From positions 124,001 to 188,000 of the IMG/VR virus record IMGVR_UViG_3300044680_000280: 64,000 bases of DNA; one strand, 5' to 3'. The position numbers and the translations under genes were made by a program. The notes below the pieces were generated by a model. That model had not been told where the DNA came from, did no database searches, and saw only the letters and a list, made by a program, of their open reading frames with translations. The stretch's first letter is position 1. Each line of letters starts with the position of its first letter. Of this stretch, positions 10,921 through 57,399 are shown piece after piece.

Positions 10921-11205
10921 CTACACCGTGGATGCTGAGACCTTCTCCAAAATCATAGCGAGCAACGGACCGATCTTCTCGAACTCGGTCCTCATGTCCT
11001 CCGAGACTTGTTTGAGGAGAGCAACATCCTCATTGGTCGAGGTCACAATCCGTTCGATAGAATCCAACCGACGAATGACACCGGCGAGGTCGTTGTCTAC
11101 CTCATCCACATGCCTGGTTACAAGCTCGAGTTTCGGAGCCACCGCGGCAACAACGGCGATCATAGTCTCTGAGTCTAGATTCTCGAATGTTGCTCTTGTA
11201 CCCAT
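10921..11205 (-). CDS. Hypothetical coiled-coil protein (94 aa)
   Basis: ATG overlaps the upstream TAA (TAATG coupling); heptad pattern. Confidence 0.6.
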   Translation of the reverse strand: MGTRATFENLDSETMIAVVAAVAPKLELVTRHVDEVDNDLAGVIRRLDSIERIVTSTNEDVALLKQVSEDMRTEFEKIGPLLAMILEKVSASTV

Positions 11206-12089
11206 TAGAACCCCACAAACTTTCGTGGACTCAATACACCACGTCCTGCATAGGGTCCGAAAGCGCTTCGAATACCCGTACCAAACTTAGGTTGCTGGAC
11301 ACCCTTGAGGATGTTGACGGTAGCTTTCGCCTTCTCAAGTTGCTGCGTGAAGTTCTCTTGAGCCGCCTGCTGGGCCGCCTCGTACTTCGAAGACTTGTCG
11401 AGGTTTAGGCTCACCCCGCCGATGGTATAGTCGAATTCATCGGCAACCCAATTGATACGAAGCGCCTGAAGGGCGAAGACCATCGCACCCGTCAGAAGCA
11501 AAGTGCGCCACTCAGGTTTCATCGCAACCATGGCGTCAACACTGGCAAACGGTGTCCTAGGGGGAGATGCGATGATCTCATCAAGGGACCGCTCAAGGTA
11601 TTCCTTAAGTTCGTTATTTTCCCAAATGAAGCCGAAGACTCGGCTAAACTGAGATATGGTCTCTTCGTGGGTCGGCGGACGAAAATGGTAATTGCGGTCA
11701 GGAGAGTTTGACACAAGCATACCAGACTTCTGAAGGATGAAATTGTGCCAACCTTCTGCCGTGAGATCATACATGTAGCGACGAGAAGAAAGTCTCTCTG
11801 TAGATAGAACCCGAACTGATGAAGAAGCACCGGCAACGACCGTTTGGGGACTCAGTGACTCCACCTCAGTCTTGAGTTTCGGGGTAAGAAACACACGATG
11901 ACCACCAGTCAGGACAGACGAGCCTTTCGTTGTATGTACCCTAAAAATAGGCTCTGACTCGACCTCTGCGCGCTGTACTTGGAGAACTCGCTTCCACTCC
12001 TGCACCCCGTTCGGGGACACGGATCGAACTCGCAAGGTCCCCGTGTAGAATGCGGACTTGATTCTCTCACTTTGCTGGGGAGTTAACAT
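11205..12089 (-). CDS. Split-intein C-precursor: IntC (aa 1-128) plus 166-aa C-extein of a probable head-tail adaptor/neck protein
   Basis: Block B VLTGGHRVF, block F MYDLTAEGWHNF, block G GMLVSN|S(+1). No block A. Has its own SD (AAAGGA, 5 nt before ATG). Confidence 0.88.
   Translation of the reverse strand: MLTPQQSERIKSAFYTGTLRVRSVSPNGVQEWKRVLQVQRAEVESEPIFRVHTTKGSSVLTGGHRVFLTPKLKTEVESLSPQTVVAGASSSVRVLSTERLSSRRYMYDLTAEGWHNFILQKSGMLVSNSPDRNYHFRPPTHEETISQFSRVFGFIWENNELKEYLERSLDEIIASPPRTPFASVDAMVAMKPEWRTLLLTGAMVFALQALRINWVADEFDYTIGGVSLNLDKSSKYEAAQQAAQENFTQQLEKAKATVNILKGVQQPKFGTGIRSAFGPYAGRGVLSPRKFVGF
11706..12089 (-). mobile_element. IntC fragment of an atypically split intein (128 aa)
   Basis: HINT blocks B, F and G; terminal Asn followed by Ser+1; penultimate Ser instead of His; no Cys in the fragment. 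Confidence 0.85.
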
Positions 12090-12345
12090 CGAAGTCCTTT
12101 TCCGTCCAGATCAAAAAGTCCCACCCCATACTGGCCGCATAGGAAGAAGCTGCCTCAAGTCGACGCTGCACGTTATGGTCCGTTGGGAGAGACAGCACCC
12201 AACTTGCTTTAACTTCAATGAGAGCAACGGTTCCATCCTGATGTGTCACAACAAAGTCTGGAAGCATCCAGCGACCGTCCGGAAGTTCTATTCGCGGTTC
12301 GAATACGTACTCTCTAACGGAGGGGTCCTGGTCTAATAAGGACAC
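12067..12345 (-). CDS. TnsA-N-like PD-(D/E)XK endonuclease (92 aa, possibly N-truncated)
   Basis: LLDQDPSVREYVFEP...LPDFVV...LIEVK...GWDFLIWTE matches the TnsA N-terminal / T4 gp4-like nuclease pattern. GTG start, no clear SD. Confidence 0.75.
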   Translation of the reverse strand: MSLLDQDPSVREYVFEPRIELPDGRWMLPDFVVTHQDGTVALIEVKASWVLSLPTDHNVQRRLEAASSYAASMGWDFLIWTEKDFDVNSPAK

Positions 12346-12362
12346 AACGACAAGGGATCAGT

Positions 12363-12860
12363 TCAGGATGTGCCGTGAATGGCTTCGTATAGGTCACGGA
12401 TAGATACTACCATATTCTCCCCACTCACGTCAACTTCTATCGTCTCCTCTTCACCTACACAATTGTCCCTAAGTAGAATACGGAGTCTCCGACCCATGTC
12501 CTGCTCCGCGGACGTTAGGGTCGGTTCAATCGAATCCGGGTTGACCTTGTCAATAACCGAAAAGTTCATGAGCACTTGCTGAATGGGCGCCCCCGGCATT
12601 TCACGAAACGTCCAGCGAATGCGATATTCTCCTAGATTTGCGTCCAAAGGAACGATAATGCTCGCAAAGTACTCCCCTAGCGATGGGTTGACGGGCTGAC
12701 GACGCGGAGCCCCAACGAGAACTTCGCGTCCCGTCGTAAAGTCGTAGAGAGCGTAGCTAATCTCGGCAGCGTTCTCGGGGGTTCCGTTGACGTTGTCGAG
12801 AAAAATGCTCAAGTCGTTACGACCGAGCTGCTGTCCCTTGTAAAAAGCGCTACCGCTCAT
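12363..12860 (-). CDS. Split-intein N-precursor: 133-aa N-extein (Ig-like structural domain) plus IntN (32 aa)
   Basis: Ends ...RILLRDN|CVGEEETIEVDVSGENMVVSIRDLYEAIHGTS*, an intein block A (Cys1...I-x-DL) followed by a stop. Confidence 0.82.
   Translation of the reverse strand: MSGSAFYKGQQLGRNDLSIFLDNVNGTPENAAEISYALYDFTTGREVLVGAPRRQPVNPSLGEYFASIIVPLDANLGEYRIRWTFREMPGAPIQQVLMNFSVIDKVNPDSIEPTLTSAEQDMGRRLRILLRDNCVGEEETIEVDVSGENMVVSIRDLYEAIHGTS
12366..12461 (-). mobile_element. IntN fragment of an atypically split intein (32 aa)
   Basis: Cys1 codon at 12461-12459; block A-like sequence; acidic composition complementary to the basic start of IntC. Confidence 0.8.
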
Positions 12861-13186
12861 TTGACCTCTTCGAGATCCTCCTGTGGCACAACGTGTCGAC
12901 CGTTCTTCTCGAGCTGTACATAGAACTTTCCAAACGGAATGTATTTCTCGATGGTACCCACGTCTCCGTGCCAGTGAGTTAAACCGTGAGAGGGCAGAAC
13001 CCTTACCCTCGTGCCTGGCTTCAGGCTAGACGGCACGCTCGCAACGCGAGCGACAACCTTCTTGACAATGAGGGCGTCCTGAAAATCTCGAAGTTCTCGA
13101 CTCATGGCCGTCTTTCCTTGGGACTTCCTCTTACTGGGAAGCCAATCCTCGTTTTCTGCGTCTAGGTGTATCTCAAGCTTGGCCAT
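12857..13186 (-). CDS. Small protein with C-terminal SH3/KOW-like domain (109 aa)
   Basis: Likely ATG at 13186 coupled to the ART stop (TAATG); LKPGTRVRV...GDVGTIEKY...FYVQL is an SH3-like barrel pattern. Confidence 0.6.
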   Translation of the reverse strand: MAKLEIHLDAENEDWLPSKRKSQGKTAMSRELRDFQDALIVKKVVARVASVPSSLKPGTRVRVLPSHGLTHWHGDVGTIEKYIPFGKFYVQLEKNGRHVVPQEDLEEVK

Positions 13187-14415
13187 TACTTCTTCTTTCC
13201 ACCACGTCCAACACACTTACCGTGTATGGCTGAAGCTCCCATCACAACCATCTCAGCCTCACCAGTATAATCTGTATTCGTTTTGGCTTTTGGGTTTGCA
13301 TCGGATCCCATGATCGGGGTCGTCAGATAGGACCAAAAGATATTTTCCACGGGAACCTTCATTTTGAAGGCGGTTCCAAAGCCGGTAGCTTGAGACGGGT
13401 CCGAGGAAAAGCTTGAAAGTTCCCTTGTCTTCACCACGAGGTCATCCCCCGGCTGAGCCTTATCGGCACCTTGCCCATTGACTCCCCTGAACAAGGTGAG
13501 TTCCTTCAATCCAAGATGCTTAAAAACAGCACGGTTGAATTTCAGAATCTCGTGGGCGTACTCTTTCATTGCTTGGTCCTTGGCACCCCTGGCCCGACCC
13601 TCTTTGGCGTCCGCCTCTTCCTTGGGAAGAGTGTAGCCCTCAACCCCGAGACTGCTCATGAGCCCATTGATCTCATCGGAGGGTGGTTGACCAGAAGAGT
13701 CCGTCCAGTCCATGACCAACCCATTATGGACCTTGTTCAACTTGGAATTGGACTTCAAATGCTTTTCAAAGTACTCCCCGATCATGTACCCGTTGACGTG
13801 GAGTAGCTTCTCAGCTTCAGACAACTGAGAGAAAGCCTCCTTAGCGACGGAGGGGGTGTCCTTGTCAGACCTGGCACCGAATTTCTTCTCGTATTCGGCA
13901 ACACCCTTCTTCATCTTCCCAATCACCTCATCCAAAGCCGCCTTGTGTTTGGAAAGGGTCTCATCTACTTCCTTGTCCGTAACGATGAGTTCCCCTTTTG
14001 GGGACATTCCAACAGACTTCTTGCTCTCCGTCCTTTTGCCATTGGACTTCGAAGGTTCGGTCTTGGGCTTCGAATCCGTGGACTTATCGGACTCTTCCTT
14101 AGGGGCTTCTCGAGGTATGGGGTCCCTCTTCTCAGGATTCTTCTTGGCCCACTCGTGGTACTCTTTGAGGGCCTTCCGAAAAACGTCTTTATCCTTGAGC
14201 GCCGTCGTAAAGGAGACATCCTTGAAACGGTCTCTGGTTTCTGGATTCGGATTGGGAACCTTTTCCGATCCGCCCTGATGGACCTTATCTAGCCACTCTT
14301 TCCACCGAGGCGGTACCCCACCCTTAGATGGATCCTCTTCCTGAGCGTCCGCGGTGCGGCCCAAGAATCGGGTCATAACTCTCAGAGCAATAGGGTTCAT
14401 TCGACTCAATCCCAT
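13186..14415 (-). CDS. ADP-ribosyltransferase-domain protein (R-S-E class)
   Basis: C-terminal TLFRGV (R), LSSFSSDP (SxS), GEAEMVV (ExE) in canonical order; charged low-complexity N-terminal half. Confidence 0.78.
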   Translation of the reverse strand: MGLSRMNPIALRVMTRFLGRTADAQEEDPSKGGVPPRWKEWLDKVHQGGSEKVPNPNPETRDRFKDVSFTTALKDKDVFRKALKEYHEWAKKNPEKRDPIPREAPKEESDKSTDSKPKTEPSKSNGKRTESKKSVGMSPKGELIVTDKEVDETLSKHKAALDEVIGKMKKGVAEYEKKFGARSDKDTPSVAKEAFSQLSEAEKLLHVNGYMIGEYFEKHLKSNSKLNKVHNGLVMDWTDSSGQPPSDEINGLMSSLGVEGYTLPKEEADAKEGRARGAKDQAMKEYAHEILKFNRAVFKHLGLKELTLFRGVNGQGADKAQPGDDLVVKTRELSSFSSDPSQATGFGTAFKMKVPVENIFWSYLTTPIMGSDANPKAKTNTDYTGEAEMVVMGASAIHGKCVGRGGKKK

Positions 14416-15803
14416 CCGTACTTAACTACCCGACAGGTCGGATCCCCTGGAATCGGTTTGGTCACGGCATCAACGACCTGAAACGGAAAATCTACCGTAG
14501 TGGGGGCACCCTGAAAGGTCACCTGATAGGACCACCTTATGAGCCAATTACCGGGTTGACCGTTCTCCCCCGACGTTCCCGTAGCGTAGTAAAGCCCCAC
14601 CTTCTGCATAACGGGGGACTTTGCGAATGGACCCGTCTGCATAATGAGCTGACCCCGAACCTGGTACATCGTGTAGCTCACGTTGTACGGAGAAATGGGA
14701 TTTCGAGAACGATCGAAGAGGCAGAGCATAAGATCCCCCCTCGTGAACATGTACCCCCAGCGAAACTGCTTGGTCAGACATGGATTGGTCTGAACATTCC
14801 CACCATCATCGGGGCACTTGCATCCGCCCCCGTGTGGATGGTATTCATCGTTACCGCCGCCACAATTACCGCTGTACGGATAACTGCCCTGACCGTACGG
14901 ATAATTTCCACCGCCCCCACAATCCCTACCCCGTCCAGGAGATAGTAATCGCCATCCCTCTTTGCGCTCCCAAATGTCTAGGTTCGTGTGACCGCACAAC
15001 CTCAACTGAGACCGCTCCCAGTTGTCAGGTAGCGTAGGTTCAGGGTTAGAACTGATGGGTGGGCAGACCGTAGTGACAAGAAGGAACGCGGCGCCACCAC
15101 CCTCTCCGAAGATCGGCATAGGAGCTGAATCCGCTGTCGTTGCAAATCCCAACGCTGAGCCACTCAAAAAATCGTAGGTGAAGAAGTTGGGCTCAGAGAC
15201 CGTAGCACCACCCGACGTAGATCCAGAGAGTAGAACTGCAATGTTGTCGAGAACGGTCGCCATGCCCCCGTCCCGCCCCGAAACGAGGGCAAGAAGATGG
15301 GGCACGGGTGTCGATAGGGTAGCAACCCCTCCGTCTCGACCAGTCTCACGGTAGACCGTATGCGGGGGAATAACTCCAGTGGCAACAATGACCGCCGAAC
15401 CGGCCAAGAGGGCGGTCACAGTGTCCGTTCGAAACGTAGACCCTCCCTGCAACGTAAGGATGACCCCACAGTCGACTCCAGACGCGGTGAATGTTGACTC
15501 GCTTGCTATCTCCGAAGCAACGCCGTCAGACACGAACACGGATTCACCGAACATGTCGGAAACAGCACCAACGTTCACGCGAGGCGTCAACGAGGAGTTT
15601 GCTGATGGGGAGGAGGAGACGGTATATTGAGCTGAAGCGTTGAACGCAATCGTAGCGCTTCCAGACGCAACAGAACCAGCCGCATAGTGCGCCTTTGGAA
15701 TATGACCGAATGACGAAGCTCCGGCCAGGTCCGTCGCTACGAAGTACCTCTCCGTGACAAACGAATCCGCGACGATATTCGCACTAGCGGACATCAGAGG
15801 CAT
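14406..15803 (-). CDS. Virion structural protein (465 aa) with C-terminal Ig-like domain
   Basis: Ala/Ser/Thr-rich N-terminus, Gly/Cys-rich linker, and a C-terminal domain resembling the N-extein at 12462-12860. Confidence 0.6.
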   Translation of the reverse strand: MPLMSASANIVADSFVTERYFVATDLAGASSFGHIPKAHYAAGSVASGSATIAFNASAQYTVSSSPSANSSLTPRVNVGAVSDMFGESVFVSDGVASEIASESTFTASGVDCGVILTLQGGSTFRTDTVTALLAGSAVIVATGVIPPHTVYRETGRDGGVATLSTPVPHLLALVSGRDGGMATVLDNIAVLLSGSTSGGATVSEPNFFTYDFLSGSALGFATTADSAPMPIFGEGGGAAFLLVTTVCPPISSNPEPTLPDNWERSQLRLCGHTNLDIWERKEGWRLLSPGRGRDCGGGGNYPYGQGSYPYSGNCGGGNDEYHPHGGGCKCPDDGGNVQTNPCLTKQFRWGYMFTRGDLMLCLFDRSRNPISPYNVSYTMYQVRGQLIMQTGPFAKSPVMQKVGLYYATGTSGENGQPGNWLIRWSYQVTFQGAPTTVDFPFQVVDAVTKPIPGDPTCRVVKYGWD

Positions 15804-20694: not shown

Positions 20695-21836
20695 TCTGTC
20701 TCCACTATGCAGTAGAACGTTGCGGCCGCCGCCGTGCCCGTGAAGGGGACGTCGTGCTGGAGCTTGATTTTTACATACATTCCGCTTGCCGACTCGATGA
20801 CAAGAGCCGACTGATAGTTCCAGGAAAGGATGACGTGAGGAGTGTTCAATCCGCGCCAAGAAGAGCCGCCAAGAGCCGGATACGTGGGATAGGACAACTG
20901 GGCGTCGTTCTGGTAATCGTTCATCGTCTTGTAATTGAGACTGTTCCCCAACGGAATGACTGTTCCAGTGGGCACGGCCCCCGAGGTCACGAGTTCTGGG
21001 GCAAAAAAGTCTACTATACCGTAGAGCTGGAAGGTTGTGGTGTCCGTAATGCCGATGTCCGTTGTGAACTGGACCTCAGCGGAGTCAATGCTCAGGTTCG
21101 TCCCTGAGTTCGGTTTGATAATGAACGAGGAATCCACCATATAGTGGTATGTGACGGTAACGACATCGGTCGGCTGATTTGCCGCGAGAAAGTGGATGAT
21201 CCCGTTCTTGTAATCGATCGTGTAGTCCCCGCCCGTACCGTAATGCGGATCCTGTTCCGTCTTCTGGGTCCCATTCACGTAAACGCTGACTCGGTAGGAC
21301 TGATTATTGCTGTCGACTAGGTAGTCCTCCCCAGTCAGTTTACCGTGGTAACTGTCAATGAGAGTTTGCTTAGAGGTCGCATAGTTGAGGTGCGTACCAT
21401 CATCGGTTGCGGTTTCCGCCGTGATGAGAACTGAGCTACCGTACCAAGTTGTGGGATCCGTCCAATCGTGCGAATAAAGAGTGGCGCGAACAACGCTCGT
21501 TTTCTCAGAGGCCACTCGGATACGCCCGTCGGCCAACCTGGGAGCCACGGTCTGGTTAGAACTCGTATGGTAATTGGTTAAAAAGTCAGTTGTGTCAGTG
21601 TCGTTTTGAGCCTGGGAGTAATCAGAATCAAACTGGAAAGTAGGAGACACTGACGAGAACACCAAGAGGCATTTGTATGCGATGTCGTCGTCAAAAGCGA
21701 AGACACAGTAACTGTCAACTTGGGTGATGTATTGTACGGACAAGTTCTTAGCTGTGCAGATCGCCTTGAAGTCGGGCCACCGTAGGGTGACGACCGCCGA
21801 ACTGTTGAAATGGATTTGTTGCGCGTAGGTGGTCAT
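20691..21836 (-). CDS. Fibre-associated structural protein (381 aa)
   Basis: Likely ATG at 21836 (MTTYAQQI; ATGA overlap with the fibre stop); DYTIDYKNGIIHF beta-module. Confidence 0.6.
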   Translation of the reverse strand: MTTYAQQIHFNSSAVVTLRWPDFKAICTAKNLSVQYITQVDSYCVFAFDDDIAYKCLLVFSSVSPTFQFDSDYSQAQNDTDTTDFLTNYHTSSNQTVAPRLADGRIRVASEKTSVVRATLYSHDWTDPTTWYGSSVLITAETATDDGTHLNYATSKQTLIDSYHGKLTGEDYLVDSNNQSYRVSVYVNGTQKTEQDPHYGTGGDYTIDYKNGIIHFLAANQPTDVVTVTYHYMVDSSFIIKPNSGTNLSIDSAEVQFTTDIGITDTTTFQLYGIVDFFAPELVTSGAVPTGTVIPLGNSLNYKTMNDYQNDAQLSYPTYPALGGSSWRGLNTPHVILSWNYQSALVIESASGMYVKIKLQHDVPFTGTAAAATFYCIVETE

Positions 21837-24685
21837 TCGAAGTACCCGTTGATGAATATGGTGCCACGAACGACCCCTGTAGTCGGACCATAGAGGTGTT
21901 TGACCAAGATGAGGAAGTACTTCCCAGGTTGTACAACGATGGGTGCGGTTAGAGTTTGGGTAATAGGTGATCCTGTAAAGATGGTGCCCACGGCGGAGCT
22001 CGCCGGTGCGGTAAAAATGCCCAAAACGTATCGTTGACCTGTAGCCGTACTCGGATTGTTGGAGTTGGCCACCATGAAGCTCCACTCCTCAATGTTGATC
22101 GTCGCCCCTAAAACCGTCGTGACGAACGGTTGGGGCATGTAAATTTCTGTCACATACAAGGTATAAGGTGACGGTACCTGATACCCGAATACCCCGTAAA
22201 GCGACTCAGACCCGCTCGTTGTCGCTATATCGAAGTCACCACCCAAGTACGCATAATTGACGCCGGTCGTGGTAGGAGCCGCAGAAGAGGGAGCAGTGGT
22301 GAAAACCTGAGAGGTCTGTAAGAACGTTGTTGGGTCAATGCCCGCTGAGCGTCCGGTTCCTGCTAATTGATGTGCCCACGGTTTGGACTCATCGATGTCA
22401 TAGCGCCAGGACTGAAAACCGGTGATCTTCGTTTCAGGAGCCGCACTCGCCGTACCAGTCGTATACACACGGGCAAAAGCAGGCAAGTGGGAGACTGCGG
22501 CCGCAACGTTTGGAGTGGCTAGGGTTATAGGAGCAAAGTAGTCCACAAGGGGAACGCCAGTCTCTGACTCAATGATAAATCGTGCGCCCCCGTCCTCGAC
22601 CCACACAAAAAACAGGTAGTAGGTAGTACCCACGAGGGTACCAAGAGAGGAGGAGACGGTCTCTGTCCCGTTGTTGGACGTAACCGCGAAAATAGTGCCT
22701 GACGAGTTAAAGCGAAAGAAGGCTCCGTTACTGACGACCGCAGTTGTGCCCGACGGAGCTCCGAAACCCAACTCACTGACAGAGTTGGTTCCTTGAGTGA
22801 CGAGTGCTTTGAACGAGCACCCGGTCGGAGCCTGGTTAAACAATGCAAATTGGCTGTTGCTTGTGATAATCGCATAGGTTGTCGTAGTCGTGATGGCACC
22901 ACTGTTCAGTGTGAGTAGACCACCACTCTGACCTATTGTCATCGTTCCAGTACTTTGAGTCCAAACCCACGTGTTGATGTTGCTTCCCTCAACGGGGTCG
23001 AAACCAACAAGCGTTTGGTACCCTGGAGTGAGGTGGCCTAAACGATTTGCTCTCGCTACCCTACCGACTCCCGAGGACTGACCAATAATGGGGACGCCTG
23101 TCTGGGCACCCGCTGTCATTGCCGTACGGTCGACAACAGATCCTAGATTACGTACCAACCCCGCCGAATCAATTCCGGATACAGGCACTGGGTTAGTCAA
23201 TGGGGTGTTGGCGACAGGAGTGGAACCCTGAACAGGAATAGGCTCCCCGTTGAAGTCCTGATCTATCTGAAGTCGATCGATATCCTCAAAAAAGGCGTAG
23301 TCAACTGAAAGAGTGGTGCTCGATGCGGCTGTCCCAGTATTTCCAATATCGGCGATAATGAAAAGTGGTGTGTACGGAGTGGGGAGGTGGATCGTATTGA
23401 TTGCCACCACGATCCCATCGATGGACAGGGTCGCCTGGTTAGCTGAAAGTCCAATGTTGTACGTGTGGTAAGTCGCCGTGGTTCCACCATTCGGCAGTGT
23501 AACCGTCGTGCTCTGGGTGTCAGTGACCGCACTAGTGTATGCTGTTGTGAAGGTAACCTGAGTATTGTTTGTACCGCTAAATCCAATGACGGCCTGCTGA
23601 TTTATAGAGGTGGGGTTGTCTACCAATCCAAGGTATGCCGATTGGTTCGCAATACGTTGAGACAATGAGGCGTAGAATTGAATGTTGAACGGGAGGTAGT
23701 CCGAAAGGCTCACAATGGATCCAGAAGACCCGCTCGTGGTACCCGTGGCAATACTCACAATCGAACTGGCCACTGTGATTGAGCCGGCCGAAGGAGTCGT
23801 AGTCTTCCAATTGCTGACGACACTCGTTGCGCCGCCCGTTGTACCCGTATAGTTGGTGTCGAGAATAAGCTGTGTTGCCGAAACAACATATGAGACCTGC
23901 GCGTAGAGGGTCTCAGAATCAGCAGACTTTTTGACGTACTGACCCATTTTGATCTGGGTCGTGAAAGAAGTCCCAGAGCCAGTAACCGTAGTCGAACCGT
24001 TCGTAAACGTGACGGTACCCGTTAGGGTTGTCGTAAGAGCCGTGCCCGTGAAGTCGTCCCGAAAACTGCCCTCATCGGTAATAACCGGACCTCGGGTCTC
24101 AAGATTCCCATAAGCGTCAATAGTTGGGGTGCCATTTCCCGAGATGTAAGATCCTGGATCTGGGTACGAACTTGATGCCTGCTGATCTATCTCGGTAATG
24201 TTCGCGTTACTGTTCGGGGAAATGGTGACCACGAGGGCGTCGTCCGTAGCCAGTGGAGCCACACCCGATGGCTTAACCGCAACTGGCCCGTTACCAGCAT
24301 TATCGAAAATACCGGTTGTCCCAGCAACCTTGTTGACGAGAGTCGCGTACACGCCGCCGAAGGACGGCGTCGTACCCGTAACCGTCCAGGTGATCTGGAA
24401 GCAGCTTCCTCTGGCCATGGCCAGAGATATGATCTGTGTGCCCACCGCCGTGATGGCCGTCCCCACGGCTGAGCTACTAATGGCGGTTGTAAAGTTCCCG
24501 GGGTCAACTTCCTGAATCGTAAACGTAATGGTAGGGGTCGTCCCTGAAACGGTGCCCGTAACATTGACGATAAGGACGACTTCTTTTGCCCCTACATCTT
24601 CGAATACGCCTGACGACCCCGACGCCGTAACCGTGGCGTTTGCCAGTACAACTTGTCTATAGTCGTCGATTACGACTTCCATCAA
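21833..24685 (-). CDS. Tail fibre/adhesin-like protein A (950 aa)
   Basis: Thr/Ser/Gly-rich, multi-module; N- and C-terminal domains paralogous to 26356-29166 and 29214-30155. Confidence 0.7.
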   Translation of the reverse strand: MMEVVIDDYRQVVLANATVTASGSSGVFEDVGAKEVVLIVNVTGTVSGTTPTITFTIQEVDPGNFTTAISSSAVGTAITAVGTQIISLAMARGSCFQITWTVTGTTPSFGGVYATLVNKVAGTTGIFDNAGNGPVAVKPSGVAPLATDDALVVTISPNSNANITEIDQQASSSYPDPGSYISGNGTPTIDAYGNLETRGPVITDEGSFRDDFTGTALTTTLTGTVTFTNGSTTVTGSGTSFTTQIKMGQYVKKSADSETLYAQVSYVVSATQLILDTNYTGTTGGATSVVSNWKTTTPSAGSITVASSIVSIATGTTSGSSGSIVSLSDYLPFNIQFYASLSQRIANQSAYLGLVDNPTSINQQAVIGFSGTNNTQVTFTTAYTSAVTDTQSTTVTLPNGGTTATYHTYNIGLSANQATLSIDGIVVAINTIHLPTPYTPLFIIADIGNTGTAASSTTLSVDYAFFEDIDRLQIDQDFNGEPIPVQGSTPVANTPLTNPVPVSGIDSAGLVRNLGSVVDRTAMTAGAQTGVPIIGQSSGVGRVARANRLGHLTPGYQTLVGFDPVEGSNINTWVWTQSTGTMTIGQSGGLLTLNSGAITTTTTYAIITSNSQFALFNQAPTGCSFKALVTQGTNSVSELGFGAPSGTTAVVSNGAFFRFNSSGTIFAVTSNNGTETVSSSLGTLVGTTYYLFFVWVEDGGARFIIESETGVPLVDYFAPITLATPNVAAAVSHLPAFARVYTTGTASAAPETKITGFQSWRYDIDESKPWAHQLAGTGRSAGIDPTTFLQTSQVFTTAPSSAAPTTTGVNYAYLGGDFDIATTSGSESLYGVFGYQVPSPYTLYVTEIYMPQPFVTTVLGATINIEEWSFMVANSNNPSTATGQRYVLGIFTAPASSAVGTIFTGSPITQTLTAPIVVQPGKYFLILVKHLYGPTTGVVRGTIFINGYFE

Positions 24686-55389: not shown

Positions 55390-57399
55390 CTAACGCATGC
55401 GACCGCGGAACCCGCGACTTATGCCTGCTCGTGGGCTCATTCGCTCAGTGAATACCCCATGCTTGCGCATACGGGACATGTGGTATCCCTGCAAACTAGG
55501 ACCGGTTGGATTGCGAGTCTGCTCAAGTCCCTTATAGGTGTGCTTGAGGTTCGACATCTTGTCAGCAGTGAGCCAAACCGCTCGGACAAGAGCGTCCGCC
55601 TGGTCGTCGTGGTATCCACTTTTCTCAGGCGCCCCAACTATGACAATGTTCCTTGACACCTGCTCGGCTTGAAGGGTTAGGAGCTCAGAGATGAGGGGAG
55701 AGTGCTTGGATTGGGAGCCGGCCCCCGGAATTGGGTAGTCGTAAAGAACGAGCTTGTGGTCAAGCATGAAGGACTTTACCGTTTGGTACATTTTCGACGT
55801 TGTGTCCCGAGTGAAGAACTCACACTTGATATGACCGTACCCTCGCTTGATGAAGTCCTGCTCCATCGACATACCCTGCCACCGGTCGTAAAGACCGTCC
55901 GTAATGTGGAATCGCTTGGTCAGACCTATGAGCCACTCCAAAATCTCGTCAAAGTCTAATCGGTCCTCATCCTGCATACGGCGGGCATAATCGCAGGAGT
56001 AGTCGGTAAGGTGCGGATTGAGCTCCTTCCAGTCGTAACCGGCACGCCAGTACTCATGATAGGCCAGAACGATCTTACCGTCTAGAGGGTACGTAATGGC
56101 AACAGCGGTACCGTCTCGATCCCCTGCGGCACTACCGATACCGATGTCAAGCCCTAGTTGGTGCGGATACTTCGGGAACCCAACCATAATGGGGCGACGA
56201 ACTGGATCAACACAGTCGATGAGGTCCTTCTCCCTCTCAATCCAGGCACGGACTCGATCCGAGAACCGAGCCCCATGCTCAGTTTCAAAAGTTGTCGGAT
56301 CCTCGTAGTACTTCTCTCGATAGTAGTCGGAAGAAACCGTGGGATTGATCTCCCAGGTGGGCATCTGAATTGCCAGCTTGTTGTACGCTCCGTCCCCGCC
56401 CTTCATGGCTGTCTGAAAAAGCTCGTAAAACTTGCCAGACTTGTTGAGTGGCGAAGAGATGCAAATGATACGTCCCTCGTTCGGCCCTATAGGCTTGGTC
56501 GAGTCCTCAGGATCTTTCGGAGAAAAAGCCGCCTTGCTAGGAGAGATGGCGTCGTAGATATCCTTTGCAGACGACTGACCCTCATCAATAAAGTGAGCCA
56601 TCTCATCGAGAATCATGACGATGTTACCAGCACCGCGGAGACCCTTGGCGATGCAGCTTTTGAACGTGACTCGAATCGTCGCCTTGCCGTTCAGAGACTC
56701 GTAGCGACCGCCCGCCGTACGGTAGGACGTACCAAACTTCTCGATGTCGTGAGGCGTACGAAACTTGATATCACTGAGAGTGTTAGAAGCAATGTACGGT
56801 TTGAAGTAGTCGCATCGAGCCAAGTGGGAAGTCACCTCATTGAAGAGAAGCCCCGCCTGATCCTTGTCCGTAGCGACGGAGATGATTTGGATCCGGTTGC
56901 CTGAGGGTAATCCGTAGTAGCTCTGAGGATGGTGTAAATTGAGGAGACGGTAAACCTCGTAGCTGGCAAAAATACCTGCCAAAGTAGTCTTTCCTCCGCG
57001 ACGGCCGATGGGCAAAATGAGCTCTCGGCGCTCATGGTCCTGCTCCGCGATGTTGCAGCGGCCCTCACTATAGAGGTACTTCAAGTACTCGACCTCAGTG
57101 AATTGATACTTCACATGAGTCGCAAGCATGTCCTTGATCTCGATCGTCTTCGTCGTGTCGTCGAGAGGAATGTGGTAGTACAACTTGACAATAAAGCGCT
57201 GTACTGGGTAAAGGGTCATGCCTAGACCCCAGTCGCTCTCAATGTACTCAATGATGTTGAAAATGCGTGGCTGCTTAGGTCGAACAATGACGTCATCCTG
57301 ACCGACGTTCTGGTCTAGAACGGCTTCAACTCTCTGTTTTGCCTCTTTGCCAGCTTTTCGAATGAGGGCCGACAGACCCCCTGCTTCATCTTTCGCCAT
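55390..57399 (-). CDS. terL: Terminase large subunit
   Basis: Walker A IGRRGGKTT, Walker B MILDEMAHF, coupling motif ISSP, RNase H nuclease LGLDIG and HDDQADA. Confidence 0.95.
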   Translation of the reverse strand: MAKDEAGGLSALIRKAGKEAKQRVEAVLDQNVGQDDVIVRPKQPRIFNIIEYIESDWGLGMTLYPVQRFIVKLYYHIPLDDTTKTIEIKDMLATHVKYQFTEVEYLKYLYSEGRCNIAEQDHERRELILPIGRRGGKTTLAGIFASYEVYRLLNLHHPQSYYGLPSGNRIQIISVATDKDQAGLLFNEVTSHLARCDYFKPYIASNTLSDIKFRTPHDIEKFGTSYRTAGGRYESLNGKATIRVTFKSCIAKGLRGAGNIVMILDEMAHFIDEGQSSAKDIYDAISPSKAAFSPKDPEDSTKPIGPNEGRIICISSPLNKSGKFYELFQTAMKGGDGAYNKLAIQMPTWEINPTVSSDYYREKYYEDPTTFETEHGARFSDRVRAWIEREKDLIDCVDPVRRPIMVGFPKYPHQLGLDIGIGSAAGDRDGTAVAITYPLDGKIVLAYHEYWRAGYDWKELNPHLTDYSCDYARRMQDEDRLDFDEILEWLIGLTKRFHITDGLYDRWQGMSMEQDFIKRGYGHIKCEFFTRDTTSKMYQTVKSFMLDHKLVLYDYPIPGAGSQSKHSPLISELLTLQAEQVSRNIVIVGAPEKSGYHDDQADALVRAVWLTADKMSNLKHTYKGLEQTRNPTGPSLQGYHMSRMRKHGVFTERMSPRAGISRGFRGRMR

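Follow-up and report, generated by a model that had tools for sequence, protein, structure and literature searches.

Within a 64,000-nucleotide (nt) stretch of virus record IMGVR_UViG_3300044680_000280 (hereafter the window), the minus strand carries a phage gene that is divided between the two halves of a split intein, with a further open reading frame (ORF) lodged between them. Positions given below without a locus name are those of the window, and the features of this gene all lie on its minus strand. The upstream ORF (12860..12363, 165 amino acids (aa)) consists of a 133-codon N-extein (12462..12860), which ends in LRILLRDN and aligns with intein-free homologues such as P0007, followed by a 32-aa N-terminal intein fragment (IntN; CVGEEETIEVDVSGENMVVSIRDLYEAIHGTS, CVGEEET...HGTS; 12366..12461) that starts with Cys1 and is closed by a stop codon at 12363-12365. 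The downstream ORF (12089..11205, 294 aa) starts MLTPQQ and encodes a 128-aa C-terminal intein fragment (IntC; 11706..12089), in which block B (LTGGHRVF), block F (MYDLTAEGWHNF) and the terminal MLVSN were recognised from an alignment of relatives and the derived profile. This is followed by a C-extein of 166 codons plus stop (11205..11705), which begins SPDRNYHFRPP and provides the Ser+1 nucleophile. The last IntN codon and the IntC ATG are separated by 276 nt (12365..12090). The original prediction, made from the letters of the window, had placed in this gap a 92-aa ORF in another frame that overlaps the IntC start by 23 nt and carries PDF...IEVK and LLDxDPxV motifs; each of these particulars proved exact when the minus strand was rechecked.

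The 92-codon ORF (12067..12345) begins with GTG, and its product contains the motifs SLLDQDPSV, LPDFVV (with Asp30) and LIEVKAS (with Glu44 and Lys46), together with Glu16. Pfam family PF08722 (Tn7_TnsA-like_N) matches it at an E-value of 4.6e-9 (37.2 bits against a cutoff of 26.5), the match being limited to profile positions 24-85 of 85, and PHROG 218 ('head closure', ~148 aa) matches at 8.8e-7. Relatives are scarce, with only five found among 5.8 billion proteins; they are 64-77% identical and occupy the same position in related phages. Three of them are N-terminally complete and have about 36 additional N-terminal residues that include IWTRSSYER, and the fifth (P0002) is simply the ORF of the window itself, predicted with an internal start codon. 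The fourth, P0003 (93 aa), was considered as a second, identical truncation and rejected as a gene-caller artefact, its contig being cut at the 5' end and the RSSYE codons being present. Since the Pfam match is above threshold and homologues with 64-77% identity lie at the same position, this is not a chance ORF. The S-x-x-E helix motif that normally precedes the PD-(D/E)XK residues is absent from the 92-aa product, and no purine-rich Shine-Dalgarno sequence precedes the GTG at 12345, both as the original prediction had noted in suggesting that the ORF might be a decaying remnant. A stop codon closes the frame four codons upstream of the GTG.

Comparison with related loci reveals what has been lost. 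A 620-kb contig (locus L002) carries at the same position an ORF of 321 codons, which begins within the final codons of IntN and extends far enough to overlap the IntC start; locus L004 has the same long ORF, and L005 has it with a nonsense codon. The 92-aa product is 79% identical to the intact L002 enzyme over the shared part and corresponds to residues 221-310 of the intact enzyme. When the window DNA is aligned to L002, L004 and L005, one clean gap of ~605 nt appears at 12346..12352, removing residues 19-220 (L002 numbering). The 5' end of the gene survives upstream of this junction as its native GTG and 15 codons (VTYTKPFTAHPELIP; 12353..12397), recognisable by comparison with the PHPELVPLL starts of the intact relatives, and overlaps the end of IntN in another frame. 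Past the junction the reading frame is shifted and reaches a stop codon 12 codons on (12314-12316). Lost with the deletion are therefore all of the helical N-terminal region, two strands and the first part of the helix bearing the near-invariant Glu of RSSYE, and the sequence resumes at V221, just beyond that motif. Because the deletion is out of frame, and because the 92 codons could be translated only from an internal GTG without a ribosome-binding site, the ORF is a pseudogene fragment, a truncated and almost certainly inactive remnant of a nuclease with the TnsA fold. The suggestion of a decaying remnant is thus borne out by an out-of-frame loss of ~605 nt from a gene for a ~310-aa enzyme.

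This arrangement is not an assembly artefact, because the junction was seen in two DNA assemblies and in one RNA library. A 99-kb and an 86-kb contig from two peat-metagenome runs, which may include the window's own source sample, show no difference from the window over 11100-13300. In addition, a peat metatranscriptome run (X6) contains a 135-nt adapter-flanked fragment that is identical to 12249-12383 and runs from the end of IntN across the deletion junction into the remnant; this fragment may represent either polycistronic read-through RNA or DNA carried over into the library.

To characterise the enzyme from which the remnant derives, we used the L002 protein as the reference. An exhaustive search with this protein returned 357 relatives, of which 32 (cluster representatives) have E-values below 1e-30, and many are 290-330 aa long and align end to end. 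Within a 20-sequence family alignment no variation is seen at E238, D252 and E266-V-K268 and hardly any at R215, S216 and E219 (RSSYE); the columns that correspond to Asp30 and Glu44-Val-Lys46 of the window ORF are invariant in this alignment and nearly invariant in a larger one of 66 sequences. PF08722 matches the intact enzyme with 34.7 bits. The AlphaFold model of the L002 protein (predicted local distance difference test, pLDDT, 90.9) is entirely helical over residues 17-194, followed by an alpha/beta domain. Its best matches in the Protein Data Bank (PDB) are the TnsA structures 1t0f and 1f1z (E-value ~1e-5, probability 1.00, root-mean-square deviation 2.2-3.9 Å over ~140 columns), and further matches are to the PD-(D/E)XK nucleases Hjc, Bax1, McrC and the subunits of BspD6I. 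The proposal of a TnsA-like PD-(D/E)XK nuclease, which the original prediction drew from motifs, thus finds agreement in both family assignment and predicted fold. The structural link to TnsA required fold comparison, because sequence searches of the PDB missed TnsA both with the 92-aa ORF alone, which gave chance matches only, and with the profile of the whole family. For the N-terminal region, the family profile search yielded only weak helix-turn-helix-like sequence matches, and we take this helical part to be a putative DNA-binding region. In the intact genes the ratio of nonsynonymous (pN) to synonymous (pS) differences per site is 0.2-0.6 with synonymous sites saturated, and since pN is far below pS in both halves of the gene, the intact enzyme appears to be under selection for function.

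Neither the window ORF nor the L002 protein has a Pfam match to the C-terminal part of TnsA, beyond the N-terminal nuclease domain, and neither matches Vsr or DUF559. No TnsB, TnsC or other transposase family was matched among the searched neighbours, which are phage genes, most of them without a family match. TnsA-like nuclease domains (FYRSSYE...PD...VEVK) also occur at L018:2572-3390 and L020:2245-3339, fused there to other, cysteine-rich N-terminal regions. That of L020 additionally contains short repeats that are NUMOD3-like by eye only, and the gene adjoins a capsid-like gene; the phage contexts of L018 and L020 are unrelated. These two cases hint at a wider set of free-standing nuclease genes that share the TnsA-like fold.

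Related loci were gathered from viral and metagenome contigs through alignments of the enzyme and of IntC, and the 45 distinct loci that show both the end of the N-extein and the start of IntC were classified automatically. A full-length TnsA-like gene (290-330 aa) fills the gap at 27 of the 45 loci, and at six the gene is disrupted by a nonsense codon, a frameshift or an internal deletion, although two of these (L011 and L016) have long open frames and may be intact. Stubs of 0-90 codons are found at nine loci, the window included, an HNH endonuclease gene replaces the TnsA-like gene at one (L026), and the intein is contiguous at two (L061 and L086). Uninterrupted open copies are nearly all 290-330 aa long, the shortest being ~250 aa. 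The eight other stubs are different and much shorter pieces (0-41 codons) with different deletion end points: in L025, L031 and L040 the first 20-35 codons of the nuclease gene are joined to its last codons, in L044 only about the last 27-40 codons persist, and in L033 and L057 almost nothing is left. Because these end points differ, the nuclease gene has been lost repeatedly and independently. At every locus that shows both the TnsA-like gene and the host gene, the former lies between IntN and IntC, and among the loci surveyed no TnsA-like gene occurs in an unsplit host gene.

The two contiguous inteins differ in position. In L061 (1173-2465, on a metagenome contig) a 158-aa intein occupies the exact site of that in the window (LRDN|CVGAEE...VVISN|SPDR) and shares 68% identity with its split counterparts in L025 and L026, while in L086 (1117-2505, also a metagenome contig) the insertion site is six residues downstream (NPDRNF|SILGSEK). 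A split intein whose break is occupied by a Vsr-like ORF was also observed at this downstream site in L090 (NPDRNY|SVSGSEK). In L026 (1675-2511; IMGVR_UViG_3300037422_000307) the gap between IntN and IntC holds a 278-aa HNH ORF (PF01844, E-value 1.6e-9). L025, which is close to L026, retains a stub of the TnsA-like gene, and the pair suggests that one homing gene has replaced another at a single break point.

Most homologues of the host gene have no intein at all. Among the 120 best C-extein homologues 105 are intein-free, with the junction LLRDN|NPDRNY, and such alleles are single ORFs of 298-306 aa that lack any nuclease ORF. When 131 C-exteins are placed on a maximum-likelihood tree, the split state requires 17 changes, at least nine of them forced by well-supported branches, and the window falls in a supported group of ten whose other nine members, P0007, P0008 and P0009 among them, are intein-free. 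Recombination within the C-extein could blur this tree; the patchy split state fits repeated gain by homing, repeated loss, or both. Intein-free, contiguous, split with intact nuclease, disrupted, stub and HNH-replaced states therefore coexist at this site. The original prediction had raised the coexistence of intein-free, contiguous-intein and split-plus-nuclease alleles, all three of which were seen in the related loci, and had named as contrary evidence the same ORF in unsplit relatives, which was found at none of the loci surveyed. Its claim that insertion of a TnsA-like nuclease created the split calls for qualification: the TnsA-like gene is the predominant occupant of the gap (27 of 45 full-length), but it is not provably the first, since the gap of L026 carries an HNH gene, and that the insertion caused the split is something we infer.

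In contrast to the decayed nuclease gene, the split intein appears intact and is presumably still needed for making the host protein. All splicing residues are present, namely C1 in IntN, T61-G-G-H64, D108, H115 and N128 in IntC, and S+1. The IntC motif T61-x-x-H64, block F and Asn128 with Ser+1 are conserved across 13 aligned relatives, and the window IntN is 50-75% identical to the IntN of most related loci. Although the single IntC sequence falls below the threshold of the Pfam Intein_splicing family (27.4 bits against a cutoff of 35.8), a profile built from the IntC alignment matches solved inteins (2jmz, E-value 1.8e-6; 7cfv, 1.6e-4; and 4e2u). When IntN and IntC are modelled as a complex the docking score is 0.85, and the highest-scoring of three controls gives 0.02; in the calibration set, that mark was attained for 51 of 78 solved complexes and for 2 of 108 mismatched pairs. 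The score reflects likeness to known intein assemblies, and the model predicts that the fragments associate. When relatives are compared, both exteins and both halves of the intein have pN values far below pS. The break follows intein residue 32, between blocks A and B, so that block B (TGGH, residues 61-64) lies on the C-fragment, and this position is a rare, atypical site. Translation of IntC could begin from a Shine-Dalgarno-like AAGGA (12095..12099), which lies 5 nt upstream of its ATG and inside the TEKDF codons of the remnant; the stretch GAAAAGGACTT is conserved in the four aligned loci. We also considered a promoter for the nuclease gene inside IntN, at a sigma-70-like site (12433..12404) that ends 7 nt before the native GTG, and dropped it, as the number of such sites is not above the shuffled expectation and across 19 loci IntN shows no conservation at third-codon positions.

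Taken together, these observations make it very probable that the window ORF is what is left, at the 3' end, of a gene for a free-standing homing endonuclease that lay between the halves of a split intein. The ancestral state, as seen in relatives, would have been a 299-aa protein with a mini-intein of ~160 aa between LLRDN and (S)PDRNYHF, in which the gap after intein residue 32 would have held a gene for an enzyme of ~310 aa, running from the last IntN codons to over the IntC start. The enzyme would have combined an all-helical N-terminal region with a C-terminal PD-(D/E)XK nuclease of TnsA fold (RSSYE...PDF...EVK). During co-infection it would cut the intein-free allele near the LRDN/NPDR codons, and repair would copy the intein halves together with the nuclease gene into the cut allele. 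Trans-splicing would then join the two protein pieces and restore the host protein, making the insertion tolerable. Once no empty targets remained, the nuclease gene would be expected to decay, but the split intein would have to stay, and the out-of-frame ~605-nt deletion in the window would represent the end state of such a homing-endonuclease life cycle. The anatomy of the locus, the deletion, the family and its fold, the coexisting alleles, their patchy distribution and the conserved intein residues come from the loci themselves; cutting, repair copying, trans-splicing and later decay are extrapolated from what is known of homing endonucleases and fractured genes (PMC2677866).

Several points weigh against this interpretation or qualify it. 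Cleavage, homing and trans-splicing by the family are predictions. The contiguous intein of L061 could be either ancestral or the product of secondary re-fusion after loss of the nuclease gene, and the TnsA-like gene may not have been the original splitter. The remnant itself displays no decay beyond the deletion and is open for 92 codons. Its pN relative to L002 is 0.13, below that of the flanking intein and extein segments (0.21-0.27), and there is no excess of amino acid changes on the window lineage relative to L002, the distances to outgroups being if anything shorter for the window. We attempted to date the deletion from dN/dS and abandoned this approach: synonymous sites are saturated (pS 0.7-0.9), so that dN/dS cannot date the event and only pN and rough relative-rate comparisons are possible. 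Judged from these comparisons, constraint seems to have acted on the remnant region during most of the period after the window and L002 diverged. The simplest reading of so pristine a remnant is that the deletion is recent; continued constraint on the remnant, for example for translation of IntC, is less likely because the other stubs retain varied pieces.

A related idea is that the 92-aa ORF is still expressed or useful, either as a spacer that passes ribosomes from IntN to IntC (translational coupling) or as a truncated domain that interferes with incoming nucleases. The ORF is indeed intact with no excess of amino acid changes, starts 17 nt past the IntN stop codon, contains the AAGGA and overlaps the IntC ATG, and the RNA-library fragment covers its 5' part. 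Nevertheless its GTG lacks a Shine-Dalgarno sequence, the native start now runs out of frame into a stop codon, and the RNA fragment may stem from polycistronic read-through or from carried-over DNA. The tendency of other stubs to retain the 5' and 3' ends of the nuclease gene, which might also speak for a function, is accounted for by coding and start signals that belong to the flanking genes, and the different 0-41-codon pieces kept by the eight other stubs indicate that no particular protein segment is retained; we therefore regard a continuing role of the ORF as unlikely. It is barely credible that the 92-aa product is a complete minimal PD-(D/E)XK nuclease of the Hjc or T4 gp4 type that still acts as a homing enzyme, even though Asp30 and Glu44-x-Lys46 are present and the PHROG 218 match is to a family of ~148 aa. 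The product lacks the near-invariant Glu of RSSYE and two N-terminal strands as well as the entire putative DNA-binding region, the deletion is visible in the DNA alignment, hardly any open copy falls short of 290 aa, and the ORF has no ribosome-binding site. Very improbable, too, is the view that the gene is simply broken, with halves that no longer splice and a locus decaying as a whole. The sub-threshold Pfam intein match would agree with this, but the intein retains Cys1, T-x-x-H, block F and the terminal Asn, with Ser+1 following, pN among relatives is far below pS in intein halves and exteins, the C-extein is 91% identical to an intein-free homologue, the halves are predicted to dock far above the controls, and the IntC profile matches solved inteins. 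The reading that best accommodates these data is thus an inactivated homing-endonuclease gene within an intein that has been retained.

The host of the intein is a conserved protein of giant phages. Its C-extein has more than 1000 homologues, mostly from proteins of 298-306 aa, the best of which is the intein-free P0007 (91% identical), and the predicted spliced product of the window is 299 aa long, the length of P0007. Intein-free homologues run uninterrupted through RRLRILLRDN-NPDRNYHFRPP, and because these alleles are continuous across LLRDN/NPDRNY the splice junction is fixed. Pfam assigned no family to the host protein. PHROG 17327 ('head-tail connector') matches weakly (E-value 0.002-0.013), and Atlas gave weak leads only, to neck, adaptor and connector families (scores ≤0.90). 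The AlphaFold model reaches a pLDDT of only 69, and its fold matches are Ig-like domains and, weakly, the portal-adaptor chain 8gtd_M; the protein is possibly a neck or adaptor protein. The gene upstream (ORF 14406..15803) encodes a 465-aa protein whose C-terminal part (14433-14765, minus strand) resembles the beta-sandwich of the N-extein (28% identity, E-value 1e-5), and relatives likewise have an upstream paralogous domain of this kind.

A second intein, ~30-35% identical to the first, was observed in the C-extein of many relatives at NWIADEF|SYSIGG and is absent from the C-extein of the window (11208..11705). It is contiguous in L012 (4535-4990), whereas in L008 (4553-5931) and L040 (3164-4601) it is split after ~33 residues by a Vsr-like ORF (VDGCYWHGC), of which a remnant occupies the corresponding break in L017 (4216-4827). 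One gene can therefore carry two atypically split inteins, each with its own nuclease family.

The 406,734-bp record, of which the window represents bases 124001-188000, is classed as a provirus in IMG/VR, with a CheckV completeness estimate of 85%, and the runs that contain window DNA are peat metagenomes. Nearly all long ORFs of the window lie on its minus strand, and few ORFs match phage families, most of the long ones being without a PHROG match. Among the few recognisable genes are those for a large terminase (55390..57399, by family match) and a tail-fibre-like protein (21833..24685). Since long minus-strand ORFs with few family matches are accompanied by terminase and tail-fibre-like genes, the source is a very large, poorly characterised phage. 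A near-identical copy of the genome is present on a 464-kb contig. No second copy of the nuclease or of the intein was found in the 407-kb genome, and two HNH-like matches occur beyond the window, at genome positions 221099-221251 and 269791-269919.

Considered alone, the window copy is a case of ordinary decay, a dead end state; the wider interest lies in the family to which it belongs. We lean towards the view that the loci define a new family of homing endonucleases, with a helix-turn-helix-like N-terminal region and a TnsA-fold nuclease, that is tied to one atypical intein break (residue 32) and whose loci preserve all main stages of the life cycle together with natural inteins that have a short IntN. 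A branch hitherto catalogued only as a transposase, TnsA, would then be a candidate resident homing endonuclease of inteins, which, if true, would bring one more nuclease lineage into the repertoire of homing enzymes. The more than 40 related loci, with a near-complete life cycle of one site, provide material for testing how split inteins originate and how homing genes disappear. Split inteins whose N-fragment is ~30 residues long are moreover rare in nature and are sought for protein labelling, and the family comprises many diverged variants.

The arrangement of a nuclease gene between intein halves has been known since 2009, when free-standing GIY-YIG or Vsr-like homing-endonuclease genes were described between the split-intein halves of fractured genes (Dassa et al. 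2009, PMC2677866), and the original prediction was correct in citing Vsr-like nucleases among them. As in those genes, the elements follow one another on one strand in the order N-extein-IntN, endonuclease ORF, IntC-C-extein, the ends of the ORF overlap its neighbours, the setting is phage or metagenomic, and intein-free relatives exist; PMC2677866 proposes entry of a nuclease gene into an intein, a model to which the intact, degraded and lost states of the present loci correspond. Two things are out of the ordinary, a nuclease from a family not described in such a role and an intein divided at a rare, atypical position. The nuclease belongs to the TnsA-like family (PF08722) rather than being of GIY-YIG or Vsr-like type, and TnsA is not mentioned in that paper. 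The intein is housed in a giant-phage protein from the virion-gene region, not in an enzyme of DNA metabolism, and the break after residue 32 lies outside the usual region of endonuclease insertion, to which PMC2677866 records one exception only.

Recruitment of a restriction-enzyme-type fold for homing has precedents in I-Ssp6803I and I-Bth0305I (Vsr-like/EDxHD; PMC3239194, PMC3424549), and I-Bth0305I shares with the present family the combination of an N-terminal DNA-binding part, putative here, with a C-terminal nuclease. The family described here belongs to a different PD-(D/E)XK branch, and its homing activity is predicted. In a 2012 survey of PD-(D/E)XK proteins PF08722 (TnsA) figures solely as a transposase, and no groups other than Vsr/DUF559 and Ssp6803I are credited with homing. 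No relevant paper that combines TnsA, homing endonuclease and intein or phage was found in the library searched. TnsA itself, the subunit of the Tn7 transposase that cleaves 5' ends (1f1z, 1t0f), belongs to the same Pfam family and is the best structural match of the L002 nuclease domain. The L002 protein differs from it in its helix-turn-helix-like N-terminal region, in an identity of only ~20%, in having no match to the C-terminal part and in the lack of recognised TnsB or TnsC partners among the searched neighbours.

The closest counterparts of the intein are the atypical split inteins AceL-TerL and GOS-TerL, in which IntN and IntC measure 25 and 104 aa and 37 and 115 aa, respectively (PMC11766414). 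They differ from that of the window in having the large terminase as host, and the window intein has the nucleophile pair Cys1/Ser+1, with splicing predicted. In fragment lengths and break, on which the comparison is made, they are alike, sharing a very short IntN, a long IntC that includes block B and a phage-derived metagenomic origin.

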